Assembly: GCA_002189035.1 (NCBI GenBank)
Contig: CM007992.1
Location: forward strand, 2,418,001-2,482,000
Source of the DNA: Utricularia gibba
Taxonomy: Eukaryota > Plantae > Magnoliophyta
DNA length: 64,000 nucleotides
Direction of reading: 5' to 3'
The notes under the pieces are model-generated. The model had not been told where the DNA came from, did no database searches, and saw only the letters and a program-made list of their open reading frames with translations. Position 1 is the first letter of the stretch. The number at the start of each line of letters is the position of its first letter. Below, piece after piece: positions 9,721 through 63,811 of this stretch. The position numbers and the translations under genes were made by a program.

Positions 9721-9948
9721 TTTCAAGAATATCATATAAATATTTTAAATTATAATTTTCTATTATGACTACGAAAAAGAATTAGGGTCAGCCTTAACAC
9801 CTCATCTTTCCTTTCATGATTTTTATTTATTGGATTATTCAAAAAAAGACAATCATCAATTAAAGAATATTTTGCATCTTCATCAAAGGAAACATAAACT
9901 TCTTCTTATAAGGTATATAAACTTTGTATTCTTTGATAGTATTATTAT

Positions 9949-11371
9949 TGATAAACGGGAATTTACTAATATCGTTGAAAATAAAAATAGAAAATCCGTA
10001 TCAAATAAATTTATAATCCCTAATCTACAAAAAATACAAATTTGGAAAACTTGTATAGTGGATATCGGGATCGATCACGAAGACCTTGTGTTTGCTAAGT
10101 GTTTTAGTAAATGCATGATTTCGGATAACAGTAGGTCTTAGTCTAAGCTCGGACTAACGGTGGTAAACAAGTTCAGTAAACAAGGTAGGTAAGCAATATC
10201 AGGTTTCTATGCTAGGGTAACAGGTACTGGTTTTGACTCAGACTAATACGAGGACGCCTTAAGGATCTGCGGGTGGTGTTATGCTAAGCTTCCTAACTTA
10301 ATTTATTATCTTCCTACACTCACAACTTCAAATAACCGAAGTCTACCCAGGTCATTCATCATATTTTTGACTTAAGCTAGTCCCCAATATCATAACCAAC
10401 ATTACAATTAGGTCTACCTGCATGCAAGACATATAGAACTAGGTCTACCCGGTTCTACTGGTTCTATCTTGAACTAACACCGACTGATCCTATCTTGGTT
10501 TGTTGGTTTACCTCTAAACCAAGCATCTAAGTTGTGAAACTACTTGCTCCCCTCCTTAGGTCTATCCATGATTTGTTAGAAACAAGAGTTAAGGAAGACA
10601 ACTAAATTTCATCATCAACCTAAGCACATACCACCCACTTCTCTTTAAGGCATCCCTAAGACTCTAGCCACTCATGCTTTGGAAACAAAACACAATTTCA
10701 TTCACATAAGCTGGCCAAAATGACAGAAACATTGTAAATAATTAAAATGCAGAAATTCGAAATGTTCAGAAAACTAGAAAGTAAATAAAGATTGTTCTTC
10801 CGCTCGTTAGCTACTGTTCACAACCCGGAACAGTAGCGCTGGACTGGGCTCCGGTGCTTTTCTAGGTGATAAAGGCGTTTCTTCCCTCTTCTCGTTGGTG
10901 TTTTTCCCGTTGGGGAAGAAGACCCCTTTGCGTCCCCCCCCCCGGTGGCTTCACTCCGTTCTCCTTCCTCCTTTTTTCCAAAAAATAAATTTCTCCTTTC
11001 CTTCACTCCATTGCACTGTGGCTGTCCGCCAGTACTGTTCCCGACCGCCAGCATTGTTCCTGGCCTGAACTTGCAGACTGCGGTGGCGGCAGAACAGTGC
11101 TCTTTGTCCTTCTCCGGATTTTGTGCCCCTTTTTTGCTTGTTTTACACGTTTGCAAGTCTGATTTTCGTCTCATCTCCCTGCTGAACTTACTGAAATGTT
11201 AGTAATAAAAGTTGTGGATTAAATCAAAGGATTTAGTCCACTTTTCAACATAATCACATAGGATTAACATGAACACCACTAAAGCATGAAAAACTACATT
11301 TTATCTAACCTAAATCATGATAAAATATATCTATTTTGTGTTATGAATTTTAGGAAAAATGTGTGTTATCA
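9949..11371 (-). mobile_element. Gypsy (Athila-like) solo LTR, family A
   Basis: TGATAAAC...GTGTTATCA termini, 1423 bp, flanks ATTAT/GTTAT (4/5 TSD). Homologous to 19815-21199 and 55615-~56440. Confidence 0.88.
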
Positions 11372-27652: not shown

Positions 27653-28477
27653 TTAATCAAACAGTAAATATATGTAAACATGTATATAAATCTTTTATAT
27701 TATAATGTCAAACATACTTTATTTGATTCACTAGGATGGTATAACCTCATCAGAATGCATTTTCATTTTCATGGATATATTTCTTTTCTAACTTCATATT
27801 TTAAACTATAAAATTCCATTTTAAAAAAAAATGAAAAAAGAAATCAACACCAATCCATTGATAATAGGATGTCTAGACAAGTGTCCACTACCTAAACTCC
27901 CTAATGACTTCTCTTTCTTATCCAATAACCCACCCTCCACCTCATCTGGGTTCATTAATTATCCTAAATTCAGGCCCTTTTTTTAATAATTCTTAATCCT
28001 TCTCGGTATTCCTTATCCAATCAAAGCTATGTTTTCAATCATATTGAAAAAAAGAATTAAACTATTTTCTACGAAAAAAAAAAGAATTCAAGAGTACTAT
28101 GGAGTTGCCTCTAATTCATCATTCAAGCGTTGGATTCTTCTGATAGTAATAATAATAATGTAAAAGTATTAGTTTTAATTTCATTGATGTCACGACCACA
28201 ACTACTATATATTATAATTATAGAGTATTATTGCATGGGGCGGTCATTTTTTATCATCTTCGTATTTTGAAATATATATCATATTCGGATCGTCACAATA
28301 CTATTCCTAAAGTGCACATCTCGTTCTGTGCATTTATTTTCAAGACAATAGGTTCTAATGCATGTAACCAATGAGATTTTTTGTCCTATTTTGATTGGTT
28401 GTAGTGTTAATTAGTCAAATTTTGTGGCCAATGAGACTGAATTTGATTACGTCCTTTTTGTGGAAAGCTTGGTTCAC

Positions 28478-28512
28478 ACGCGTTCGCGATCCGCCCCTCT
28501 CTCAGTATAAAT
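28478..28512 (+). promoter_or_regulatory. S40 core promoter: CGCG boxes and TATA box
   Basis: ACGCGTTCGCG from 28478 (CAMTA-type vCGCGb) and TATAAAT at 28506-28512, about 55 bp before the ATG. Confidence 0.6.
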
Positions 28513-28563
28513 CCCCCGGCTGCTGCTATCTGGCCTACGTTTCACCTCCAAGTCTCCGGCTGC

Positions 28564-28895
28564 ATGGCGGATGAGTTCGACGAGTCCGAGATTGTGTTCT
28601 CCGGCGGCGCCGACCACCCGGCGCGCGATCAGGCCACGACGTCGAAGGTTCTAGCGCGGAGGAAGACCGGCTCCGGTCCACTCAGAATCCATTGACCACC
28701 ACACACAACCGGCGGGTGGAGGACGACTACGAGGGAGGGGAGATGGTCCCCCCTCACGTCATCGTCGGGCGCCGCGTGGCCGGGCAAATGATGCCCCACT
28801 CTGTCTGCGACGGCAACGGGCGGACTCTCAAGGGCCGGGATTTGAGCGCGCTTCGGAATTCCGTCTTGAGAATGACAGGTTTTTTGGAGAATTGA
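28564..28895 (+). pseudogene. Senescence regulator S40 (DUF584) gene with a 1-bp frameshift, or a sequence error
   Basis: ATG 28564 gives MADEFDESEIVF...GPLRIH* (TGA 28693-28695). The conserved C-terminus (EMVPPHVIV..SVCDGNGRTLKGRDLSALRNSVLRMTGFLE) is in another frame ending at 28895. One added C (ATC CCA TTG) restores a ~110-aa S40 protein. Confidence 0.88.
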
Positions 28896-38705: not shown

Positions 38706-40293
38706 ATGGAGAAAGAGCCACTTCTTCCTTCCAGGCGATTGCAACCGTCGCCGGTAGGATCGCTGTGCCCTTTGCCGGAGGATACCGAAATCGCCATTCA
38801 CCAGGTACCCATTTCTTCGTCCTTCGAAGAATTCAAGGATAGGCTGATTTTCGGGCCATCCTCGTCTCCTCCCTGTTCGACGCCGGATACGGAAAGACTG
38901 GGTTTTGAGAACCATACATTGAATTTCGACCCAGAAAAACAGCAGTCCTGGTTAATTGATCCTGATTATGCTCCATCTAAGAGCAATCTTCACCGCTCGA
39001 AAACTGCGCCTGCCATGGCTACCATTAATGACATCCAGCAATCCGATGACACTAACAAGCCACCTTCGTTTGTTAGCCCTTCGATTGTCAGGCAAGGGGT
39101 TATTTTCTTGGTCCTTTACTTGAGCCTAGGGGTGGTTATATACTGGTTGAATAGACATAAATTCAAAGCGTCCGAGACTCACCCCGTTGTTGATGCGTTA
39201 TATTTTTGCATTGTCACCATGTGTACTATTGGTTATGGGGATATAACGCCAGATAGTGCTGCTACCAAGTTGTTTTCGATCACCTTTGTTCTTGTGGGGT
39301 TTGGTTTTATTGATATTTTGTTGACTGGGATGGTGAGTTATGTTCTCGATTTGCAAGAGAATTACCTTTTGAAAACTATCAAGAGCGGTGATTCTCATGA
39401 CCCAAGGTCTTATCTAGTTGACGTGAAGAAGGGGAGGTTGAGGATTAGAATGAAGGTGGGGTTGGCACTAGCTGTTGTCATTCTTTGCATCGGAATTGGG
39501 GTGGGAGTGATGCATTTTGTTGAGAATTTAGATTGGTTGGATTCATTTTATTTGTCAGTTATGTCTGTCACGACGGTAGGATATGGTGACAGAGCATTTA
39601 CATCCTTGTCTGGGCGCATTTTTGCATCAATTTGGTTGCTGGTGTCTACCCTTGCTGTGGCAAGAGCCTTTCTGTACTTAACGGAGGCAAGAATTGACAA
39701 AAGGCATAGGAAAATGGCCAAATGGGTGCTTGACCAAAAACTGACAGTTGCTCAATTTCTTGCTGCAGATATCGATAACAATGGCTTCATCAGGTATTTA
39801 AATTACAGTCGCGTATTGTGATAAGATGCTGCTCTGATTTTGTGCATTCTGCTGTTTAGCTTTTGCATGCTACTGATCTAGCCTCTTGGGATATTTTCAA
39901 GTTAACTATGCCTAGACAATATATATTGTGTTCGAATCTGGCTCCTTTTACGATCAATATTGCAACACTGTCATTCATGTATACAATGGTAAAGTATGGT
40001 GTGCATGCATGGACTTTGGGTTTGAGCTACGAGTAGTATTTGATGTGCTGCATCTGTTCAGTAAGTCAGAGTTCGCCATATACAAGCTGAAGGAGATGGG
40101 CAAGATAACAGAGAAAGACATCTCACTGATCTGCAAGCAGTTCGATCGGCTGGACAAAGGGAACTGTGGGAAGATCACTCTTGGTGATCTCATGGAGAAC
40201 AATCACAGTTGTAATATCAGAAGACAGGTCTCATCAGGCCCTCTCCGTATACAGCCCCATCCTCAAAAGACAGATGTCTTCCAACCCCGGTAG
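38706..40293 (+). CDS. TPK3: Two-pore (tandem-pore) K+ channel, TPK3/TPK5 type, 439 aa, 2 exons
   Basis: Exons 38706-39793 and 40062-40293. Two GYGD pore motifs (TIGYGD, TVGYGD), 14-3-3 site HRSKTAP, EF-hands DIDNNGFISKSEF and DRLDKGNCGKIT. TPK3 versus TPK5 not resolved. Confidence 0.93.
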
Positions 40294-43200: not shown

Positions 43201-46200
43201 TCTTGAAGAATCGAGAAATCTTTTAGGACAACGTTTTATATGCTTGAGGTTTTGATTTTTTATTCTTCTTCATATTCGATTTAGGACCCGTGCACTGTTC
43301 ACCAATGTCACACCGACTCCAACAGTCCTCTTTGTTGCAGATTTGATCCCTATGCTGCCGCCGCAAACAAACTCTATCCACAATCTACTTGTCTCGACAT
43401 ATCTGCCATTGGTTACCTCTGATGTTCACAAATTGTCTCTAAATCATCCGGTTGTTTGGTGTCAGTTCCCTGACACTGCAAAAATCGACCATTTTGATGG
43501 AAAGAACTTTTGGCATTGGAAAGATCGAATCTTTTGAGTTGCTGAATATGCATGGCGTTGCCTAGGCTCTCGATGTCGCCAAACAGTCAGCCACAAACTT
43601 TGAGATCCTTGTTGTGGATTGGGATTGGGCTAACCATGTATGTCGCCACAGGATAATTACCATCTTTATTGATAGTCTCTTCGATGTGTATGTAGTCTAC
43701 AAAGATCTCGCGTCCATATGGAAGTTGATGACTAAAGTACATCGCAGAGGAGGCCGTTACATCTTGATTTGCAGTCACCAATTTCCTGTAGTGGGAGATG
43801 TCTGATGACAAGAAGGTGGTTGTCAAGATCAATGAATTCCATGGCCTCTTGGACAACATGGCTGCTCAAAACATCAATCTACCTTCAGAGTTCATCACTA
43901 ATTCGCTAATACACAAGTTGCCATGAGGATGGGATGATTATAAGGTAAGGATTAACCAATATGATCGATCAAATAGCCATTGAGGAGAGGCAAAGGAAAA
44001 CTTGAAAGAAGTCTATCAGCCATGAATATCAAGTGAATGTCCTCAAGCATAAACATGGGAGGTATAAATCTTGCTCGAAACATTTTGATGCTGGTTTTCA
44101 TATTGTCTTAGCTTCTACTAATGATCGTATTAAAAAGAAAAAGGACCATTATTTTGTTTGTGGTAAGATAAAATACTAAACTGCACAATGCAAGCACAAG
44201 AAGATTGGCAAACTTGGTAATGAGCCTCCCAAAGCCAATATTAACATGTCTCAGGGAGATGATAATGATGAGGTGATTGTTACCAAACTTGGTTACTTGA
44301 ACCCAATTGAGGCTAGTGGTGATTGGATCATAGACTTAAGAACAAACTATCATTCGGGGAGGGGGAAACTAACCCTCCCCGAATGCCACACCGCGTGTGT
44401 GCACGTCGTCCATCAACAAAGACTAAGGCTAATGAAGTAATCAAAATATTGTTTATCTAAAAAATGATTAAAAAATATAATATGAACTTTATTATATAAT
44501 GTTAATAAATAATAATGAGTTGATATTTAGATATAAATATAATGTAATATTAATGTAATTAATTTGAGTAATATTGTTGATATTGTTTTTTTGAATTTTT
44601 CAAGTATTATTTAAATATTTTTTAAATTTGAAGAGAATTTTATGATTATTTCTAGTGTTATCATACTTATCAATTTATTAAAATGATATATAGATAGAAA
44701 AAAAAAACAATACTAGAAATCTCAAAGACATTATTCATCCATTTCATTTGGTATTCGAGTGGCACAACGTCGACCTCATCCGTGTTTCTCTCAGCATTTA
44801 TCGTGATACAAGTACCATAGAACCTCTTGCCATCCATGTTCTTGACCTAAATCTTGTAAAATCTTGTCAGCATACTGCATTTGTAACAAATCCAAGGTCG
44901 ATTCTCGAATGACCATTTGATTTAATGACATTCGATACATTTTCCCACATTTCAGAGCATGAGCGCAAGGAAGACGATAGATCAACCACTTTCCACATGT
45001 ACATGTTTGGGCTTGTAAGTCAACAGTTTGTCGGTTCCACTTAGCACGTTTTCTACTGACGACGTAAACATAACCTATAAGTTGATCAGGATCCCAATAA
45101 TACAATTGATAACGACCTACCTTTTGTTGTTGTTTATGAAACCATGAGTTCGTCTCATCTATAAACATCTACAAAAAAAATTTAAATTAGTAAAAATAAC
45201 ATAGTAATGCAATTAAAAATATCATAATTTACCTTTCTATTATCATTGAAATGAGCGATCTCTTGTCGTCTTTTAATGAACATTGTTTGAGTCCAATAAA
45301 AATTGGAATCTACAATGTGTCTACCACCATCACGACAAACAACAATTAATAATTTATGATCATACCTGTATATCAAAATCATATTTAGACTATGAAAAAA
45401 AACACAACATTATACGAGAGTAGAAATATTATCATGCATAAAGACGTGTTGCATCAATTGAAAGGGTCAGGGTATACAATTGATATGCCTCTACACAAGG
45501 CTTAAAAGCCCAAAAAACATACCGAAATATCTTATGATCTGGACCCAATTGCGTATCATAAACCGACCATTCTACAATTGTCCCCGGATTTGTCACTTGG
45601 AGCGCATACATATAATGTAGCAATTTATTCATTGATGATTCCCAAGATCCATGAACAAGTTCAAATGTACATTGAACACCAAACCAGGCTTTTTCATAAT
45701 CAATAATATAATTGTACCATATTTGTATCTCAGCAAATGCCTTACGAACCGTCAACTCTGAAATAAATAAATAAATTTTAAAAAATAATGCTAATTAAAC
45801 CAAAAATAAATAATAAAAAATCATATTTCCTTACATATTCCAAACGTAATCTATCAAATCTTGTCTAATGAAACTTATAGAAATGTTTCTATGTTTGTTT
45901 ACCTCAATTCCACTTCTACAAGTATGAGGATATGAAACTTTGAACTACTAGATCCCATCTGGCTTCGATTCATAGAGAAGAATATGAAACTCACATTGAG
46001 TTGCTAAAGCAGAATAACATTTTAACACCAGATGCTTTGATTTCCTTTCAACGACACAAAACTGAAAATGCTTCTTGATGTGCCAATGACGAACACAAAA
46101 ATAAGCTTCATCTTTAGATTTAAATCCTAATCCTACTTCCAGAACAGGATTATCAAGGTCATAGCTCATATATACTCGTTTAGTAGGCAATTCATTGGCC

Positions 46201-46599
46201 AAAATCGGCTCTCCCCATTGAAATAAAATAGCCAATCTTTTAGAAGCATTACCTGAAAACTGATACCCCAAACTTGTTGCATGTAAAATAGGAACTCGTA
46301 ACAATTGATTATTGATATCAAAATTTTCTTGAAACCCATCTTCATCAATGTTTCAAATTGTCACTGGCTCATGTTCTTATTCAAAAAGATGAAGAATCAA
46401 AATCATGTATTGGAAGAGAAGTAGATGCTATTGTGTTATCAAAGTTTTCAATGGAAAAAGAAACACAATTGAAAATTGCAAAAGTGAATCAATTGCTCTT
46501 GATTGAAGTCTATATTGATAGTTGAAATAACCTAATTTCTAATTTATTTTATGAGTACTAAATTAATTTAAAAATTAAAAAAATCCACCGTTCTCAATT

Positions 46600-46920: not shown

Positions 46921-48411
46921 ATTTTCTTTACACATAAACGCGAAAAAGCCCAATTTCCACAATCAAGGTATAAAGTAGCCTACATAACCCATTTTGCCTA
47001 TGGATGGAGGCTATTTAAAGTAACATGGATTTGATCCATCAGAACAAGGCATGGGAAGTAGTGGACCTACCCCCTGGGGCAAAGTCAATTGGGAGCAAGT
47101 GGATCTTTAAAAAAAAGTTCATTGCGAATAATAAAGTAAATAAATACAAGACTTGCCTTGTAGCAAAGGGTTTCACTCAAAAACTGGGTGTTGACTACCT
47201 TGAGACATTTGCCCCAATAGTTTACTTATGTATCATACGACTACTCTTTGCAATGACATATGTGCACAATTGGACAGTTCACCAAATGGATGTCAAAACG
47301 ACATTTTTGAATGATGAATTGGAGGAAGAAATCTTCATGTTTCAACCTAACGGTTGTATAAAAACTGGAGATGGACACAAAGTGTGTCGAATGAAGAAGT
47401 TATTGTACAGCTTGAAACAAGCAATTGACAGATGTGCTTACCCTAAGACTTTTAATGATCATGTGTAATCATAATCCTCTATGTGGATGATATGCTGATC
47501 AAATCTAGACACTATGTTAGAGGCCAAGAAATTCTTAGTCTCTAAATTTGAAATAAAGGACATGGGAGAAGCTTGTTATATACTGGGAATCAAAATTGTA
47601 AGAAATAAAGTCATTACACTGAGAAACTCTTAAAGAAGTTTGGTTTCCATGATGTGAAACCAATGAGGACTCCATATGATCTCAGTATTAACTTAAAGAA
47701 AAATAGAGATGACCTTGTGTCCTAGAGTGAATATGCTCAGATAATGGAAAGTGTGATGTATCTAATGAGCTCAACTTGGCATAGCGTATATAGTCGATAG
47801 ATTGAGTAGATACACACACAATCCTAATAAGAGTCATTGGGCAGCTATGAGATGGTTATTGAGATACCTCAAAGGGACAATTGACTATGACCTTCAATAT
47901 CATAGAGAACTCATTGTATTGGAGGGATATAGTGGTGCTAATTGGGTATCTGGGATATAAAAGCCAAAGGCTACAAGTAGAGTGATTTTCACTTTGGGCA
48001 GAGGAGTTGCATCCTAGAAATCCACCAAATAAATCTTGATAGCTAGATCAAAAATGGAAATTGAATTCATTGCATTAGATCTAGCAAGAATCAAGGCCGA
48101 GTGGTTGAGAAATTTGTTGATGGGAATCCTACTCAGGCAACATGGATCCTTCTCACTGGTACTGCATTGTGACTATCAAGCAATAATTACCACGACCAAG
48201 AATCAATCTTATAATGGAAGAAATACACATATGCAACTAAGGCATGGAATATTGAGACAACTGTTGAAAACCAGTGTGATATACATTGAATACATGAGAA
48301 CATTAGTGAATTTGGTCAATCCATTGACCAAATCTCTCAATAGAGAGAAAATTTGTGAGCTTTCGAGAGGAATGGGACTAATGACGTTAAGCAAAAGATA
48401 GTGATGGTAAT

Positions 48412-55610: not shown

Positions 55611-55614
55611 AAAT

Positions 55615-56440
55615 TGATAAACGAAAATTCCTAATGTCATTGTAAAATTCAAATTTTCGTATCAAATAAATTTATAATCCCTAATCCTCATAAAATATAA
55701 ATTAAACACAAAATATAAAATGGAATTCAAGGTCGATCATAAGGACCAAGTGCTTGTTGTGTGTTTTAGCAAATGCAGGATTACGAAATATACGTGGTAC
55801 TCTTAATCCAAGGTTAGACTAACAATGGTAGATAAGTTCAGTAATTAAGTACAAAATAATACTAGGATGCCTCAAGATGATGTAGGTGATGTGGTACTAA
55901 GGTCTCTAATTTAATTTATAATGTTTCTATGATCACAACTTCAAATAACTGAAATCTACCTAGGTCATTTGTCATATTTTTTTATTAACATAGTCCTGGA
56001 TTTCATTACCCATCATACACTTAGGTGTATCTATGTGCAAAATATGTAGAACTAGGTATATCCAACTCTACTGGTTTTACCCAGGATTAACATCTACTAT
56101 TCCCGCCTTGATTTGTTGGTCTATCTTTAAATCAAGTATTTGAGTTGCGAAGCTGTTCATTCCTCCCCTTAGGTCTATTCGAGAAATGATAGAAACGAAA
56201 GCTAAGATACAATCATAGATAACTTAGAACTCCTAAACTACATCACCATTCTACATCTTAAGTCATCCTTAAAGTTTAACCACTTATGTTCAAGAGATAA
56301 AACATGATTTCATGAATATAATTTGAAGAAAGCATCTCAAACATTGTTAAACAGACAGCCATGGCGAAATAGTAAGCAAAAAAATTAAAAAAAGTAGAAT
56401 AATCTTGTTCTCCATCTACTACTATTCAAAGCACGGAACA
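55615..56440 (-). mobile_element. Partial family-A LTR
   Basis: Starts TGATAAACG and follows family A for about 800 bp, then passes into unrelated LTR-like sequence (~56450-57420). No matching end or TSD found. Confidence 0.7.
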
Positions 56441-58723
56441 ATAGTATTAAACTGGGTGCTAACTTGCATGCAAAGGAAAGTTGATGGCACACGTAAGACA
56501 GAAGGAACGATGGGAAGAGGTCTAGAAGAAGTTAATGGACGAGGGGAGTAAGATAAAACCAATTTGGAACAATGACTTCTGGACTTTCGACATTTTCTTT
56601 TGAGACTTAGAACTTTTGGGTTCTTCTTCTCCTTCAAGGAGGAAGAACATTTGGCTCTCCTTTTAGTTTTCTGTTTTCATAGCCCTTTGTGGCAAACTCT
56701 TTTAGTCTCTGGGAGTAGAGGAAGTTTTCTTCCAAGATTTGAGCACTAAACTCGGTTCTTCATTGAATTCATTCCGAATTTTGCATACTTCCATACGTCT
56801 TGTTGTAGTCATTCTATAACGACTCCTAATCACGATCTACGAGTAGCAGGTCACTCCTCGTGGGTCTTGATGAAGAGCAAGGTGAAGAGCACCAACTCCA
56901 ACCCTACTGGTTTGAGGGAAGTAGCGAATTGTTCGTAATTGAGGTATCGCGACAGTGGATGAGTAGTGACCTTGTACTCGCCACTGGTCATTGGCAGCAT
57001 GTGTACAATTCGGTTTTGAAGGCAATCGACGACAATCCTCTTGTCTTCTCAATCATCCAAGGGGGAATCAAATGAGGCTATTCCATTGCCTCCTTGTCAA
57101 TCAGATTGTAAAGTAGAGTAGGTTATTCCTTGCTCTTATAACTAACTATTCGGAAGGAATCAATGAAAGCCGAAGCAAGGATAGACAAAAGGAGGAAACA
57201 GAATCCATTTCCCAGGAATTGTAACCCTTAGTCAAAGTCAATTACTTAGGTTGTATATTTTATTCTTGTACCTCTAAAATCCCCTTTTACAAATCAGTGA
57301 CAATTTGTGAAAGTTTTCTACAAAATACTTTTCGCAAAACTCAACTCCCTAAGATCGATACTCATACTACACTCTTTTATGTTTTACGTTTTATATATTT
57401 AAAATTTGTTGAGGAAACGACATGCAACATGTGTCCTCCTAGAAGTAGAATTTTGATTTCATAAGAAATCATTTCTTCTTGTTGAAGTTAATGTTCAAAT
57501 GCAAGACTCCTCCTATGAGGTAATAGACACTATCTACATATCATGAAAGATCTTTCCATTGTGCAACTAGCATCCTCTTAATTACAACATTTTGTTCATG
57601 TTTTTATGATATAAATTTAATATGCTTAGTAGTGAAAATAGTTTTATGTGTGATTTTTCATATTTTAATAGACATAGTACTATTTATATTTGTTAAGGGT
57701 GGAAATCGGTCTCCGAGTTGGGGCCGATTTTTGGGTTATAAATGCGATCGGAAATATCGTGTCTTTTTATGATTTTTGGCGATTTGTTCGATCTGATTGA
57801 AAGAAATAAGGGCAGGCAGAGGTTTTTACGTGGAAATCACCGTAAGAAGGAAAAAACCACGGAGCTGTCGGAGCTCGTCGGAAAAATTCCTTACTAGACG
57901 GAGGTGGTGAAGATATAGGTTGGGAGGCTTAGGGTCGAACCCTTTTTCCTTCGGATCTTCTCCTATTTATAGGTGAGGTCAATCTGTCCGAATCCTCACT
58001 TCTGCAGGTGTCGGTTACTTTTGCGTATGCTATGCGATCTTGCTTTTCAGATATTGACCGCTTGTTTTGTTGTAATTCGGCTGCTTTTCAAACTGTGTCA
58101 TATGGCCACCGCTGTCAAATTTCTGGCACATATCAGTCTATCGACTGGCGTTATCCTATCAGGGCTCCTTTTAGCAGCCTTTCAGAAATCGATTATCCTC
58201 AGCCGATTTATACCCCATCATTCAGCCGCTCTGATCCACCAGCATTGGCCTTTTCAAGGCAAGTCGGTGGATCAGAACTACAACTATACTGGTTGGGGAT
58301 ATACTACTTTTCTAGGGGAGAAATCTCAAACCCATTTAGTACGATTTCATTGCCACGTGTCACCTCCTGATCATGCCATGTCTTTTCTCGCTCATTTTGG
58401 GCACCTCAAACGTAGCGTCGTTTCATCTCCCAAGTACCTTTTCTATAAGTACATGCCTCTCCCGTCGCTTCTCCCCTTTGCTTCCTCTGTTCACTTGCGA
58501 GATTTTAGCGCCATCCGTGCTCCGTTGCGCTCGTCTGCCATCGCCGCTGTCGTGAAAACCATCAGAAACTGCACATTTTCAGGTACCAGTTTGCGTTTCC
58601 TCTTCCTATTCGCTTTCTTTGGGTTTTGCCGGAGCCACCGCCCCCTCTTTCTCTTCCTAGTCTTCTCCCTTTGGCCAAATTTCGCCCAGTTCTTATGCAA
58701 GCCTTCCCTTCTGATTTCTAAAA

Positions 58724-60556
58724 ATGATTAGGAGGTCTAGTGGATTGGACATCCCCTCTCTCCGTATTCGGTACTCGATTCCCGAGGAGTACATAGTTTC
58801 TCACGCTCGAGATACTGAGATCCCTTGGGGATTGGGTGAAAGCCCCCGATACTCACCATGATTGTTGGTCTTCTTTCGTTTGGGTGGCACCTCCTTTGGG
58901 TTTTTGGTGGAACTTCCTGAATGATCCCCGACGCCTTTCCGAGTAAAGCTCTCCGGTGCATATCGGTCTTCTTCAGAATCCCGTGAAATTCTTTATGAAA
59001 GACTCAGCCGGGGTTCTATCCGTTTTGAATCTAGTGCCCTTATGTTTTCGGGTGAGTCGCTGAAGAGATCAAATATCATTGGCCGTTCTCACGATCCTCA
59101 TTGGCCTGATATTGTGCCTTCCGAGGGTTCCGGTTTACAAACTTTGCCCCCTCATTCCCCTTCGAATCTTCGCCTTGTTCCTGCTTCAACTCCGTCTTCC
59201 TCAACTACTCAACCCGCGGCCCCCAGAAAAAGAAAAGGGTAAAGGCAACCGCCCATAAACCTTCTGCGAGGCAGCAAGGTAGTTAGGTTCCGTTTTTCCG
59301 AGTTTCAGATTCGGTGTGGGGTCTTGCGATTTTCCCGCTTTACGTTTGCAACTGACGATATGGCCCGAAGGAGTGCCTTGGAGGATTCGATGATGGCCCG
59401 CTTTTCTGCTAAAATGCAGAGGATGCAGGGATTGGAAGCGGCTCATCCTGTACAGGTCTATCTTACATTTATCGGTCACCGTAGGTTTCCGATTTTACCT
59501 CTTCCAATTCTTCCTCCAGGTCAGTTCGCCTGAAAACCGCCCGAATGCTGAGGGTCACTCTGTCGAGGAGGTTCAAATGATAGCGGCGTCCGGGGCTCGG
59601 GATTCGAATTCTCCCCCCCCCCCCACCGGAAAAGGGAAAGAAAAGGTACCTCCTTCGCCTGGTCTCAACGAAGCCCTAGTTCTCGGTACGGGGCTTTCGG
59701 CGAGCGCTTTTACATCGGCTCCCCCAAGTGAGGAAGATGAGGATCAGGCTCCGATAGAGATAGAGGACAACCAAACGCTCCCTCCAACTTTGGTTCCGAC
59801 TGAATAAAAGAGGATGCTGGATGAAGTTGTACCGAGCCTTCCGGACGTTCAGCCGGAAGTAATACTTAAGGAGATTTGGCAGGTACTAATCTTCTGCCTT
59901 CTCAGTGCCATTCATAGCTTATTTCCAACTTAATAGTGTTTTTTCAGGCCTTGACTTTTAGATGGGGACTGGCCAAGAAAGTTGAGTCTCAACCCGCGGA
60001 GGTTGTTTGGCTTTAAAAGCAGGTGAAGGCTCAAGATGCCAAGATGAAGTTAATGGCTGAGGAAGGGAGTTCTCTGCAGAGCATCCTCGGAAAGTGTGAT
60101 CGTCGGGAGGGAGAGTTGCAAAACGTGATCAAGGAGATGGGGAAGGTGGTTGACGACGCCCAATTGGAGAGGGAAGGCTTCAAGGTTAGGTTCGAGGAGG
60201 CCGAATAGGAGTTGAAGTGGGCACAGAAGCGCATTTCGGTACTCGAGACGGAGTTACACCACCACAAATCATCTCGGCAGGAGCTCCTCACCGATTTTGT
60301 TAACTCGGCTTGCTTTTCCGAGTTATCAGATATCTATACTAGAGATCTAATCGACTTGCTCCTATATCGGCAAAGGCGACAAATCAGCCGAGAATTCAGG
60401 TTAGCGATCACGGATCCGCGTATTGACAGGGTCGATCCCTTGAGGAAAGACGAGAACATGCTGGATGTTATCGCAGATGTGTATCCAGCTCCTGAATTCG
60501 AATTCGAAGTAGATCGGGAGCAACTGATAGCACTCATCCGGGCAAGGATCGGGTGA
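58724..60556 (+). pseudogene. Spliced antisense ORF of the Tat element (N-terminal gypsy-aORF-like motif, basic cluster, C-terminal coiled coil), now decayed
   Basis: ATG 58724 gives MIRRSSGLDIPSLRIRYSIPEEY. GT-AG introns 59456-59519 and 59883-59947 each rejoin adjacent ORFs in frame. Probable third intron 59279-59351 with a mutated acceptor. In-frame stops at 59805, 60014 and 60206; ends TGA 60556. Confidence 0.72.
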
Positions 60557-61499
60557 GAGAACAAAGCCAAGTTGCGAGCAAGGCTAGAGGGGCATGTCGG
60601 CCCCACTATTGATCCTCCTACTAATCCCCCGCCACCCCTGAACTTTAGTTTTTCCTTACTTTTCCTCCGCTCCCCTGGAGCTAACATTTTTGTCCCCGGT
60701 TTGGGGGTTTTTGGATATTTTGGGAGTCTCGATTTGGGATTACTTCCTTTACCTTCCTTATTTTGGCCAGATTGCCTTCTATTTTTACCGGTTATTCCAG
60801 TCTACGAAACACATGGTTTGTTCGGCTAGTTATTTAGTTGGAATTTCGTGCCTGAGTATTCGTTACGAATGGATCCTCGCCTTGGTTGAGTTATCTTCTC
60901 ATCTCGGATAGGTCCTCTTGGGCAAGGTCCAAGCCTTTGGGATATATTCGGACTTGTTTCAGGTGCGTTTACCATATCTGGATTGAGGAGCACGGGCTCT
61001 GCGTAGAGCTTTCTGAGGGGTTTTTCAGTGCTTATGCGAACGGTTTGAGGAAACCGATTATCCGAGTTGTAATAGGGGTTACCCTTATTATTGGAGTCTA
61101 GACTTCTTGGATCACATATTTCGGGGAGAGCCCCGAGTTGGTTTGCTGTACCCATAGCGAGGCTTAGGTTTGGAGGGTTCGCCTAGGCTTTTGCGAGCCG
61201 GGGGATAGGTGTCTTTTTGCCAGCCCTTTGGTCGGGCTTTTGATTTTGGTTTGCCTTAATATTACCTTACGCGAGCTGAACCATTGCTAGGGAAGTAGAC
61301 CAAGACCCCTCATGGGTCGAGTGACTTCCCCAATCCGAACGGGCCCTCTTCTGGCCGAAATCCCATTGTTTTGAAGATGGGTGGATTTGCTTAGGGTGCT
61401 CTTGCCGTCTCAAGATTTCGGCGGTAAGGTTGGTACTTAAGGGGAAGCAACAGTTTACCTGAGTTGAACTCTAAATTCCCCCTGGTCTTGATCTCTGTA

Positions 61500-62959
61500 G
61501 GAAAAAAAAAAAGGGAAAAGAGAGAATGAAAAGAAAAGAAAAAAAAACAATAGTGACAATCAGCACTCTTTGGAGATAAGCACATGCCATTTTTGCTCAT
61601 TTAATCTTCGAATGCACCTTTCAGGATGAAATTGTCATGTATGCTTGAGTGGCACCCTTACATGCACACTAGCACCCCTACAACTCATGCGTTTTTAGCT
61701 GAATGTTAAGCATCCACATTGCTCTGTAGGAGATTCATTGACTATTTACCTCCTGTTAGTCTTAGTTAGGATTTGAGGACAAGTCTAGTGTCGTTGTAGC
61801 ATAATGTGATAACACATATTTTTGAGTGGCTCAATGCATGGAATTTACTTATTTTGTGCTATAAAAATTAAGCTTAATTGCGTTTTTCTATATTTTTGCA
61901 CATAAGTACCGTAGGAGTGCACTTTTAGTCTTAGTTGGGACTAAATTGCAAACCTTCTAACAGTTCCCTTCGAGTAATGCAGCATAGGTCGCAACACAAA
62001 TCCCAAGGAGCCGAATATGAACAGTGTGGTGGCAGAGAAGGTGACAGAAGTCAGAAAAAGAGTACACACAAAGTCCACGAAGGTGAAAAAGGGAGATTTT
62101 GGACAAAAAGGGAGAAAAGGTGGAGAGAGAAGGTAGATCTCCCCTTGGAGACTCACGAACAACTTTCTGGAGAAGGTTTTATGGGGAGGAAGACGAACAG
62201 GAACTAAGCTCATGCTTGAAGATTGTTTTCTGTTTTCCAAGGATTATTACTCCTAGCTAGATTAGCTAGCGACGTTTTCTAACTTTATGTCGAACATTTC
62301 AGTTTCCTGCTTGTTTATCTTCTAGTAGTCGACTGAGACATAAGTGCATTGTGGATGATGTTTTCTTTTCTATTTTTGTTTGTCTCAAGTATGAGTGGCT
62401 AAGTAATTAGGGGGTGCCTTGGGGTGAAAGGGGAGAAACATGTTAATCAATTTTTAGATCTAAACAGCCATAAGTCACGCCACTTCCTTAACAAAGCAGG
62501 ATAGAACAACCCTAATTAGAGGGTAGTAGTGAAACCCAACTTAACAACCCTAATTAGAGGTAGAACAAAGATAAGGGGGAAAAACAAGAGTTCGGGTAGA
62601 CCTAGACCTTGTGAGTTAGTTGTATGATTTGTGGTTCGTATGAGCTTGTTTGGTGATAAGCATACATCCCCTAGGAGTCTCAAGGCATCACCCATTTCAT
62701 TTCAGAAACAACCGAACTCCAGAACGTATTACTTTTCTTTACTGTATTTCGTTTCAGTTCTGCCTTAGTCCTAGCTAAGACCAATTTTACCAGCGTGACA
62801 TTAATTTCATGCATTAACTTTCACATAGCAAGCACCTACTCTTTGTGTTCGACCCTAATCACTATGCTCATAATTGTTTTATGCTTGAAGGTGTATTAGG
62901 TTATAAATTTATTTGATAGGAAGATTTACATTTACAAAGTGTAAATTTTTCGTTTATCA
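61500..62959 (+). mobile_element. 3' end of a family-B (Athila-like) element: 3' UTR plus 3' LTR (61807-62959)
   Basis: LTR TGATAACAC...CGTTTATCA is the reverse complement of the family-B copies. Flanks TAATG/CTCAT do not match. Preceded by TTGAGGACAAG (Athila-like pre-PPT motif) and A-rich UTR-like sequence. Confidence 0.82.
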
Positions 62960-63278
62960 CTCATTTTAGTAGCCTTTCAGAAGCTGATTATCCTCAGCCG
63001 ATTTATACCCCATCAATATTTGTACATAAACGTAGACTAAATCACTGATTCAATTCATCTTATGTTTTCTGATATTTACTTAATTGTTAGCAACGATGTC
63101 ATGGAACAAATCAACCTTAAAAAATATACACAACGTCATTGAGTCATGATAAACAAGCAGGGGAGACAATGGAATATTTAGCCACCGACAATCTCTAGCT
63201 TCAAGGGACAATGGATGCTTTGCAAAAGTGAAAGAAATGAGAATAGAGGATGGATATTTTTTTCTGGACAATCAACAC

Positions 63279-63811
63279 TGATAGGGTATAAACCGGTCGG
63301 ATATAATCGGTTCCTAAAAGGCTGCCAAATGAGATCCCGAGGGGATAACGCCAAACGACAGATCGACATCTGTCAGAAATCTGACAGGTATGGCCATATG
63401 ACACAGTCTGAAAAGCGGCCGAATTACGGCATGACAGGCGGCCGATATCTGAAAAGTGAGATCATATAGTAGGAGCAGAAAGCAACCGATATTTGCAGAC
63501 ACCAGAATTTGGTCAGAGTGAGCTCTCCTATAAATAGGAGGAATTATGATGAAAAGGGGGTTTTTTGGACTCAAAAAGATTTCTTCAAGTTGTATTCTCC
63601 TTTTCGTGACCTCCATCTAGTGAAACTTTTTTCCGGCGAGCTCCGGCAGCTTCGTGGTTTTTCCGCTCTCCGGCAGTTTCCACGCAAAAAATCCTTGCTC
63701 ACTCTTATTCTAATCGCACCAACCGTGAAGAACGTGACTAGGCGCGGCATTCCCGACCGCGCCTATCACCTGAAATCGGCCTCCCACCAGATACCGATTT
63801 CACCCATAACA
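63279..63811 (+). mobile_element. Tat-family solo LTR
   Basis: TGATAGGG...CCATAACA, 533 bp, perfect TSD AACAC, TATAAATAGG near 63529. Inverted homolog of 57691-58220. Confidence 0.92.

Follow-up and report, generated by a model that had tools for sequence, protein, structure and literature searches.

A decayed gene with two probable short introns, most likely antisense to the truncated LTR retrotransposon that carries it, in Utricularia gibba

The window analysed here is a 64,000-nt stretch of the Utricularia gibba genome (contig CM007992.1, positions 2,418,001 to 2,482,000), and at 58724-60556 it contains the broken remains of a gene lying inside an LTR element. This gene copy is dead. It most likely reads antisense to the element, and its better preserved part is probably divided by two short introns. 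Taken as a whole, the picture of an element-borne, antisense gene with two introns is our preferred reading, and we hold it with moderate confidence.

The host element, its truncation and its orientation

The insertion of an LTR retroelement occupies 57691-63015 and is bracketed by a 5-bp target duplication, ATATT. The parts of the element outside the gene region are as follows.

57686-57690, no strand: left target-site duplication ATATT, a 5-mer identical to 63016-63020
57691-58220, minus strand: complete LTR of the host element, 530 nt, TG...CA, interpreted as its 3' LTR, with the element on the minus strand
60557-61804, no strand: residual internal DNA with no recognisable coding content in Pfam searches of both strands
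61805-62959, plus strand: LTR of an unrelated family, 'B', 79-86% identical to solo LTRs at 16060-17229 and 24808-25964
62960-63015, minus strand: right LTR of the host element, outer 56 nt only, the 5' LTR in the minus-strand reading
63016-63020, no strand: right target-site duplication ATATT, abutting the right LTR stub

The original prediction had placed the gene within a retrotransposon, and this is borne out by the LTR at 57691-58220, the stub at 62960-63015 and the ATATT on both sides. The LTRs are direct, bounded by TG..CA and flanked by the duplication as in an LTR retrotransposon, with the right LTR incomplete. The left LTR, whose termini are TGTTAAGGG...CCCCATCA, aligns end to end with a solo LTR at 63279-63811 and gives a terminal match to the stub. 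The stub lies in direct orientation relative to 58165-58220, is 91% identical to it and has the same end, ...CCCCATCA. Five positions differ in this 56-nt overlap, which indicates that the insertion is old; this age is in line with the decayed state of the antisense gene. The solo LTR at 63279-63811 is inverted, about 70-76% identical and carries its own 5-bp duplication (AACAC), from which it follows that the LTR family of the host element was mobile.

On the right-hand side, the 1.15-kb family B LTR stands in place of approximately 470 nt of the host LTR. The two family B solo LTRs elsewhere in the window (16060-17229 and 24808-25964) have 5-bp duplications, AATAT and ATGAA respectively. A target duplication was also looked for around the copy at 61805-62959 and none was found, which points to a deletion after that copy had inserted. 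Gag-pol is absent from the element at 57691-63015, a truncation that the original prediction had not recognised. The residual internal DNA at 60557-61804 has no similarity to the LTR or to the rest of the window, and the junction of the gag-pol deletion would lie somewhere within this segment or at its right edge. The copy is thus best described, from its sequence, as truncated rather than as a demonstrable member of a mobile non-autonomous family. Searches of the element with Rfam and for tandem repeats returned nothing. A further repeat, 'A', of about 650-700 nt occurs at 9947-10593, 19812-20533 and 55612-56290; its first ~80 nt are similar to the terminal ~70 nt of the family B LTR, and it is probably an LTR from a family related to B.

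The left LTR contains a canonical CTATAAATAGG box (TATAAATA) in the minus-strand reading. No TGG-type primer-binding site occurs on the plus strand within 22 nt past this LTR, so it is unlikely to be the 5' LTR of a plus-strand element. The minus-strand DNA beside the 3' LTR is only moderately purine-rich and makes a poor polypurine tract, and the DNA that once bordered the 5' LTR on its inside has been deleted. The left LTR is therefore most likely the 3' LTR of a minus-strand element, which would make the gene antisense, as had been predicted; it is so called because of the TATA orientation and the missing primer-binding site, and not from pol. The start of the gene is some 500 nt from the inner edge of the LTR, and the direction of reading is away from the LTR, towards the expected pol side. 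At 58228-58241, 7 nt from the inner edge of the LTR, the string GCTCTGATCCACCA resembles a tRNA 3' end in sense. It was rejected as a primer-binding site, being the reverse of one and so misplaced by strand whichever way the element runs, and is probably a coincidence. A primer-binding-site-type pattern was likewise dropped, as it occurred at chance frequency across the window.

Former coding status and probable introns of the gene

The gene region is divided as follows, with all features on the plus strand.

58221-58723, plus strand, direct reading: pyrimidine-rich region 5' of the first ATG, no periodicity
58724-59278, plus strand: proposed exon 1, with an LRIRYSIPEEY string and a basic cluster; badly broken, of uncertain coding status
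59279-59351, plus strand: conjectural intron, 73 nt, donor AAG/GTAGTT, proposed acceptor without AG
59352-59455, plus strand: exon 2, open in frame 2, the frame favoured by the phase map
59456-59519, plus strand: probable intron 1, 64 nt, GT..AG, polypyrimidine tract
59520-59882, plus strand: exon 3, 121 codons rich in Pro, Ser and Glu, interrupted by a single stop at 59805-59807
59883-59947, plus strand: probable intron 2, 65 nt, GT..AG, with a run of T preceding CAG
59948-60556, plus strand: exon 4, predicted long helix followed by a predicted helical C-terminal part

Exons 3 and 4 were certainly protein-coding once, because both show strong 3-base periodicity (chi-square p=1.9e-6 and p=8.5e-7, respectively). 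When they are joined in the phase of the model, the signal strengthens to p=5e-11, with codon position 1 rich in G and position 2 rich in A; the DNA upstream and downstream of the gene has no such periodicity. Stop codons are depleted in the same frame. Exon 3 has one stop in the model frame where the other two frames have 6 and 7 (Poisson p 0.011), and exon 4 has three, including the terminal TGA at 60554-60556, against 12 and 10 (Poisson p 0.0012). The two internal stops of exon 4 lie at 60014-60016 and 60206-60208.

The N-terminal region (58724-59278) shows neither periodicity (p=0.26) nor a clear phase, and several frame changes are needed to read through it. In the frame originally proposed it is interrupted by additional stops (58859, 58922 and 59240), which the earlier count of 'three internal stops' had omitted. 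It had also been noted that the counted stops are each one C-to-T change from a glutamine codon; this is true of every TAA and TAG and hence carries no weight. Among 64-nt windows of the gene region, T content is highest within 58862-58948, where a T-rich GT..AG interval of 81 nt (58868-58948) may be an additional intron, whose removal drops one of the N-terminal in-frame stops. Exon 2 has an in-frame ATG at 59360, and a shorter gene beginning there is equally possible.

Upstream of the first ATG, a TATA-like CTATAAGT occurs near 58441, about 280 nt 5' of that codon, and is followed by a CT-rich leader containing a GT..TAG interval of 78 nt (58583-58660). It is possible that 58221-58723 is the gene's own promoter and 5' UTR, in which case 58583-58660 could be a 5'-UTR intron.

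The two GT..AG intervals that were predicted to be introns are present, with lengths of 64 and 65 nt, and each joins its flanking frames in phase 0. The interval at 59456-59519 (CAG/GTCTAT...CTCCAG/G, slashes marking the boundaries) joins frame 2 to frame 0, and that at 59883-59947 (CAG/GTACTA...TTTTTTCAG/G) joins frame 0 to frame 2. The exactness of these joins, to which the original prediction appealed, is real and is weak evidence by itself, since a further 11 GT..AG pairs at junction 1 and 30 at junction 2 also give stop-free joins. At junction 1, two frames are both open over 137 nt (59394-59530). The donors are weak past the GT, with C at +3 in the first and C at +4 in the second. What makes the two introns persuasive is base composition. 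Their T content is 41% and 43%, compared with 20-23% in exons 2-4, and both come within the top four when the gene region's 64-nt windows are ranked by T content; a reference host intron from the window, in the TPK channel gene (CAG/GTATTT...TTCAG/T), has 38% T. In addition, a phase map derived from the composition of codon positions changes from 2 to 0 and back to 2 exactly at the two intervals. In boundaries, length, T-richness and restoration of frame, 59456-59519 and 59883-59947 resemble U2-type introns, and the two short introns are probably real.

The third intron that had been proposed, at 59279-59351, has a good donor and ranks third in T-richness among the windows of the gene region (41% T). 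It has no AG at its acceptor and the frame upstream of it is itself uncertain, and it is best regarded as conjecture.

Of the protein features named in the original prediction, the LRIRYSIPEEY string, a basic cluster and a stretch rich in Pro, Ser and Glu were all found in the sequence, together with a long helix. AF2 modelled 60017-60205 as a single helix (pLDDT 91), in agreement with the earlier suggestion of a coiled coil. The C-terminal 115 aa (60209-60553) gave an all-helical model whose low quality (pLDDT 48) precluded a fold search.

Competing explanations and a proposed history

The frame changes might have arisen by decay alone. If the gene had always been one continuous frame, indels near 59456-59519 and 59883-59947 would be needed, and a single one at each junction would be enough, since both frames are open over 59394-59530 and again over 59916-59930. 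The N-terminal part has demonstrably changed frame, and the number of GT..AG pairs that fit by chance would also suit a gene that never had introns. The T content of the two intervals, however, rises sharply above that of the exons (41-43% against 20-23%), their boundaries are canonical and polypyrimidine tracts are present in them, reading through them would place hydrophobic stretches in an otherwise charged protein, and the 969 nt of exons 3 and 4 contain no other indel, all of which makes an intronless origin unlikely. It is far less probable still that the locus was never a gene and consists of chance open frames in GC-richer repeat DNA. Such an origin would fit the lack of a homologue or domain and of a coding signal in the N-terminal part, and is opposed by the periodicity of exons 3 and 4 (p 5e-11) and their frame-specific depletion of stops, both absent from the flanks.

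The relationship of gene to element can also be read in other ways. A captured host fragment, or a hAT/MULE-type passenger nested in the element or fused to it by deletion, would be compatible with the lack of a pol tying the gene to the element and with a deletion junction to the right of 60556. This non-native origin is improbable given that 58221-61804 contains neither terminal inverted repeats nor a second target duplication, that no host homologue was found among the 1.84 billion proteins searched, and that the gene, roughly 500 nt from the inner edge of the LTR, reads outwards as the published Retand antisense ORFs do. The same position past an intact LTR would suit an element on the plus strand, with the gene as a sense ORF after the 5' LTR (gag-like or of the Ogre ORF1 type), and TATTTATA is also usable as a plus-strand TATA box. 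The missing TGG... primer-binding site, the missing gag or zinc-knuckle signature and the canonical TATAAATA on the minus strand all argue against a plus-strand element, as does the tendency of sense-strand introns to disappear on retrotransposition, and we give this orientation a low probability.

Under the preferred reading of an antisense gene with introns, an old LTR retrotransposon would have inserted on the minus strand at 57691-63015. The insertion of an unrelated LTR element and a later deletion would then have removed gag-pol and most of the 5' LTR, leaving the 3' LTR together with about 3.6 kb of the DNA that, in an intact element, separates it from pol. The plus strand of this remnant would bear a dead accessory gene made up of an uncertain N-terminal exon and three well-supported exons (59352-59455, 59520-59882 and 59948-60556), the latter split by two short spliceosomal introns. 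Transcription is proposed to have run from the gene's own promoter, away from the 3' LTR. Each round of retrotransposition would have reproduced the introns faithfully, since they are present in the genomic RNA as reverse complements that the spliceosome does not see; the argument that antisense introns survive reverse transcription, made in the original prediction, is logically sound. The product would have combined a disordered linker, acidic and proline-rich, with a long helix (~60 residues or more) and a C-terminal part that was also helical.

Relatives, known systems and the surrounding DNA

Relatives of the gene were sought exon by exon. Pfam searches of the stop-free gene pieces in the relevant frames and of minus-strand ORFs gave no match, and no gag or zinc-knuckle signature was found in the gene. 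A likeness to PF04195 had been suggested; no match to this domain was found at E<=1 or even at E<=10 in stop-free pieces from the three plus-strand frames of 58724-59239, which are short (20-105 aa) and come from a frame-shifted region, so that a decayed domain could escape detection. A by-eye fit of the N-terminal part to the conserved positions of TRP28 (PMC11963269) was at chance level, with about 0.4 matches expected, and was discarded. A word search with the C-terminal piece and exon 3 found no relatives in a protein database without this species' genome, and phmmer with the C-terminal 115 aa found none among 1.84 billion proteins, also a collection without this species' genome. Five ATG ORFs were absent from the protein collection by exact look-up. 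Metagenome contigs searched with the C-terminal 115 aa and the 105-aa N-terminal piece gave no match, two gene pieces gave no usable match in the ESM Atlas, and the 105-aa N-terminal piece had none in viral contigs. A viral-contig match to the C-terminal piece, of 15 residues, lies in a 41-codon stretch antisense to a real ORF and was set aside as chance. The 300 longest ORF pieces of the window matched in Pfam only copia and MULE domains and host genes, with no PF04195. Ty3/gypsy reverse transcriptase, RNase H and integrase were found neither in the element nor in the window, and copia RVT_2, rve and gag_2 occur only outside the element. The earlier assignment to Tat/Retand thus stands on architecture and goes without a gypsy pol or a PF04195 domain in the window; the element is classed only as an LTR retrotransposon that is Retand-like in architecture. 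The suggested role of the product as a nuclear regulator or anti-silencing factor is speculation.

The position and orientation of the gene are similar to those of the antisense accessory ORFs of the Retand/Tat lineage. In every recently active Retand element surveyed, the stretch from pol to the 3' LTR contains antisense ORFs, of which an element often has several (PMC11963269; PMC7264820), and some of these have been annotated as Smc-like, coiled-coil proteins (PMC11963269). As in Retand, the gene lies beside the probable 3' LTR, reads away from it and, in the proposed orientation, opposite to the element, and has consecutive antisense frames and a long helical or coiled-coil part, in an element with a 5-bp target duplication and an LTR of comparable length (530 nt, within the 315-1194 nt of Retand). 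The region between pol and the 3' LTR spans 2.9-6.6 kb in Retand, and the corresponding internal DNA here would be about 3.6 kb if the orientation is as proposed. The element differs from Retand in having no PF04195 match, no pol and no tandem-repeat array. The share of Retand clusters with PF04195 is 97% (PMC11963269), and Neumann et al. 2019 give 23% for the extra ORFs of Retand (PMC6317226). Some Retand clusters lack the polyprotein domains GAG, AP, RH or INT (PMC11963269), and these defective derivatives also keep the region between pol and the 3' LTR; in the present element the loss is at least partly secondary, with an unrelated LTR without a duplication replacing most of one LTR. Grande gene23 of maize, RIRE2 and PvRetro13 offer a parallel in that, between pol and the 3' LTR, there is an antisense gene driven by a promoter of its own, which is putative here. 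The Grande gene23 product is reported to be nuclear (as cited in PMC7264820); the gene described here has a basic cluster.

Ogre provides the precedent of a spliceosomal intron kept in a Tat-clade LTR retrotransposon (cited in PMC6317226). That intron lies between gag-pro and RT on the element's own strand and survives through partial splicing, whereas those proposed here would be antisense to the genomic RNA. The antisense ORFs of Retand are already published, and introns within them are unmentioned in the literature examined. The word 'intron' occurs 0 times in PMC11963269, where the antisense ORFs are treated as separate, and Neumann et al. 2019 report introns only in the form of the Ogre sense-strand intron (PMC6317226), while Vicient & Casacuberta 2020 urged attention to antisense and spliced transcripts (PMC7264820). 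If the introns are real, annotations that list separate antisense ORFs in Retand/Tat elements would under-describe one spliced accessory gene, and the element would be a clean natural case of orientation protecting introns during retrotransposition. The present copy, being dead, truncated and without detectable relatives, is unable to carry that argument. A broader and rather doubtful extension is that Retand-like antisense 'extra ORFs' are in general the exons of one multi-exon Pol II gene whose introns are shielded by orientation, with a Lamiales version lacking a recognisable TRP28 kept by elements without gag-pol. Were this true, selection for the spread of the element would act on the antisense gene as well, beyond the polyprotein.

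Elsewhere in the window are host genes (PP2C, a two-pore K+ channel, ALG14 and a GIP1-like gene), copia fragments and a MULE. The MULE transposase remnants, on the minus strand at 44794-46352, include a MuDR DNA-binding domain and a SWIM zinc finger. They adjoin copia RT and RNase H fragments at 47019-48398, and no TRP28-type passenger gene was detected beside them. The two-pore K+ channel gene (38706-40210) has a first exon from 38706 to about 39795, an intron of about 260 nt and a second exon from 40060; its first exon shares 81% identity with a partial protein from Genlisea aurea, the best match, and about 70% with proteins from other Lamiales, and no near-identical match turned up. A senescence-regulator S40 (PF04520) gene at 28447-28895, with no obvious intron, has its MADEFDESE... 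start and its conserved C-terminal part in different frames and may be a frame-shifted pseudogene.
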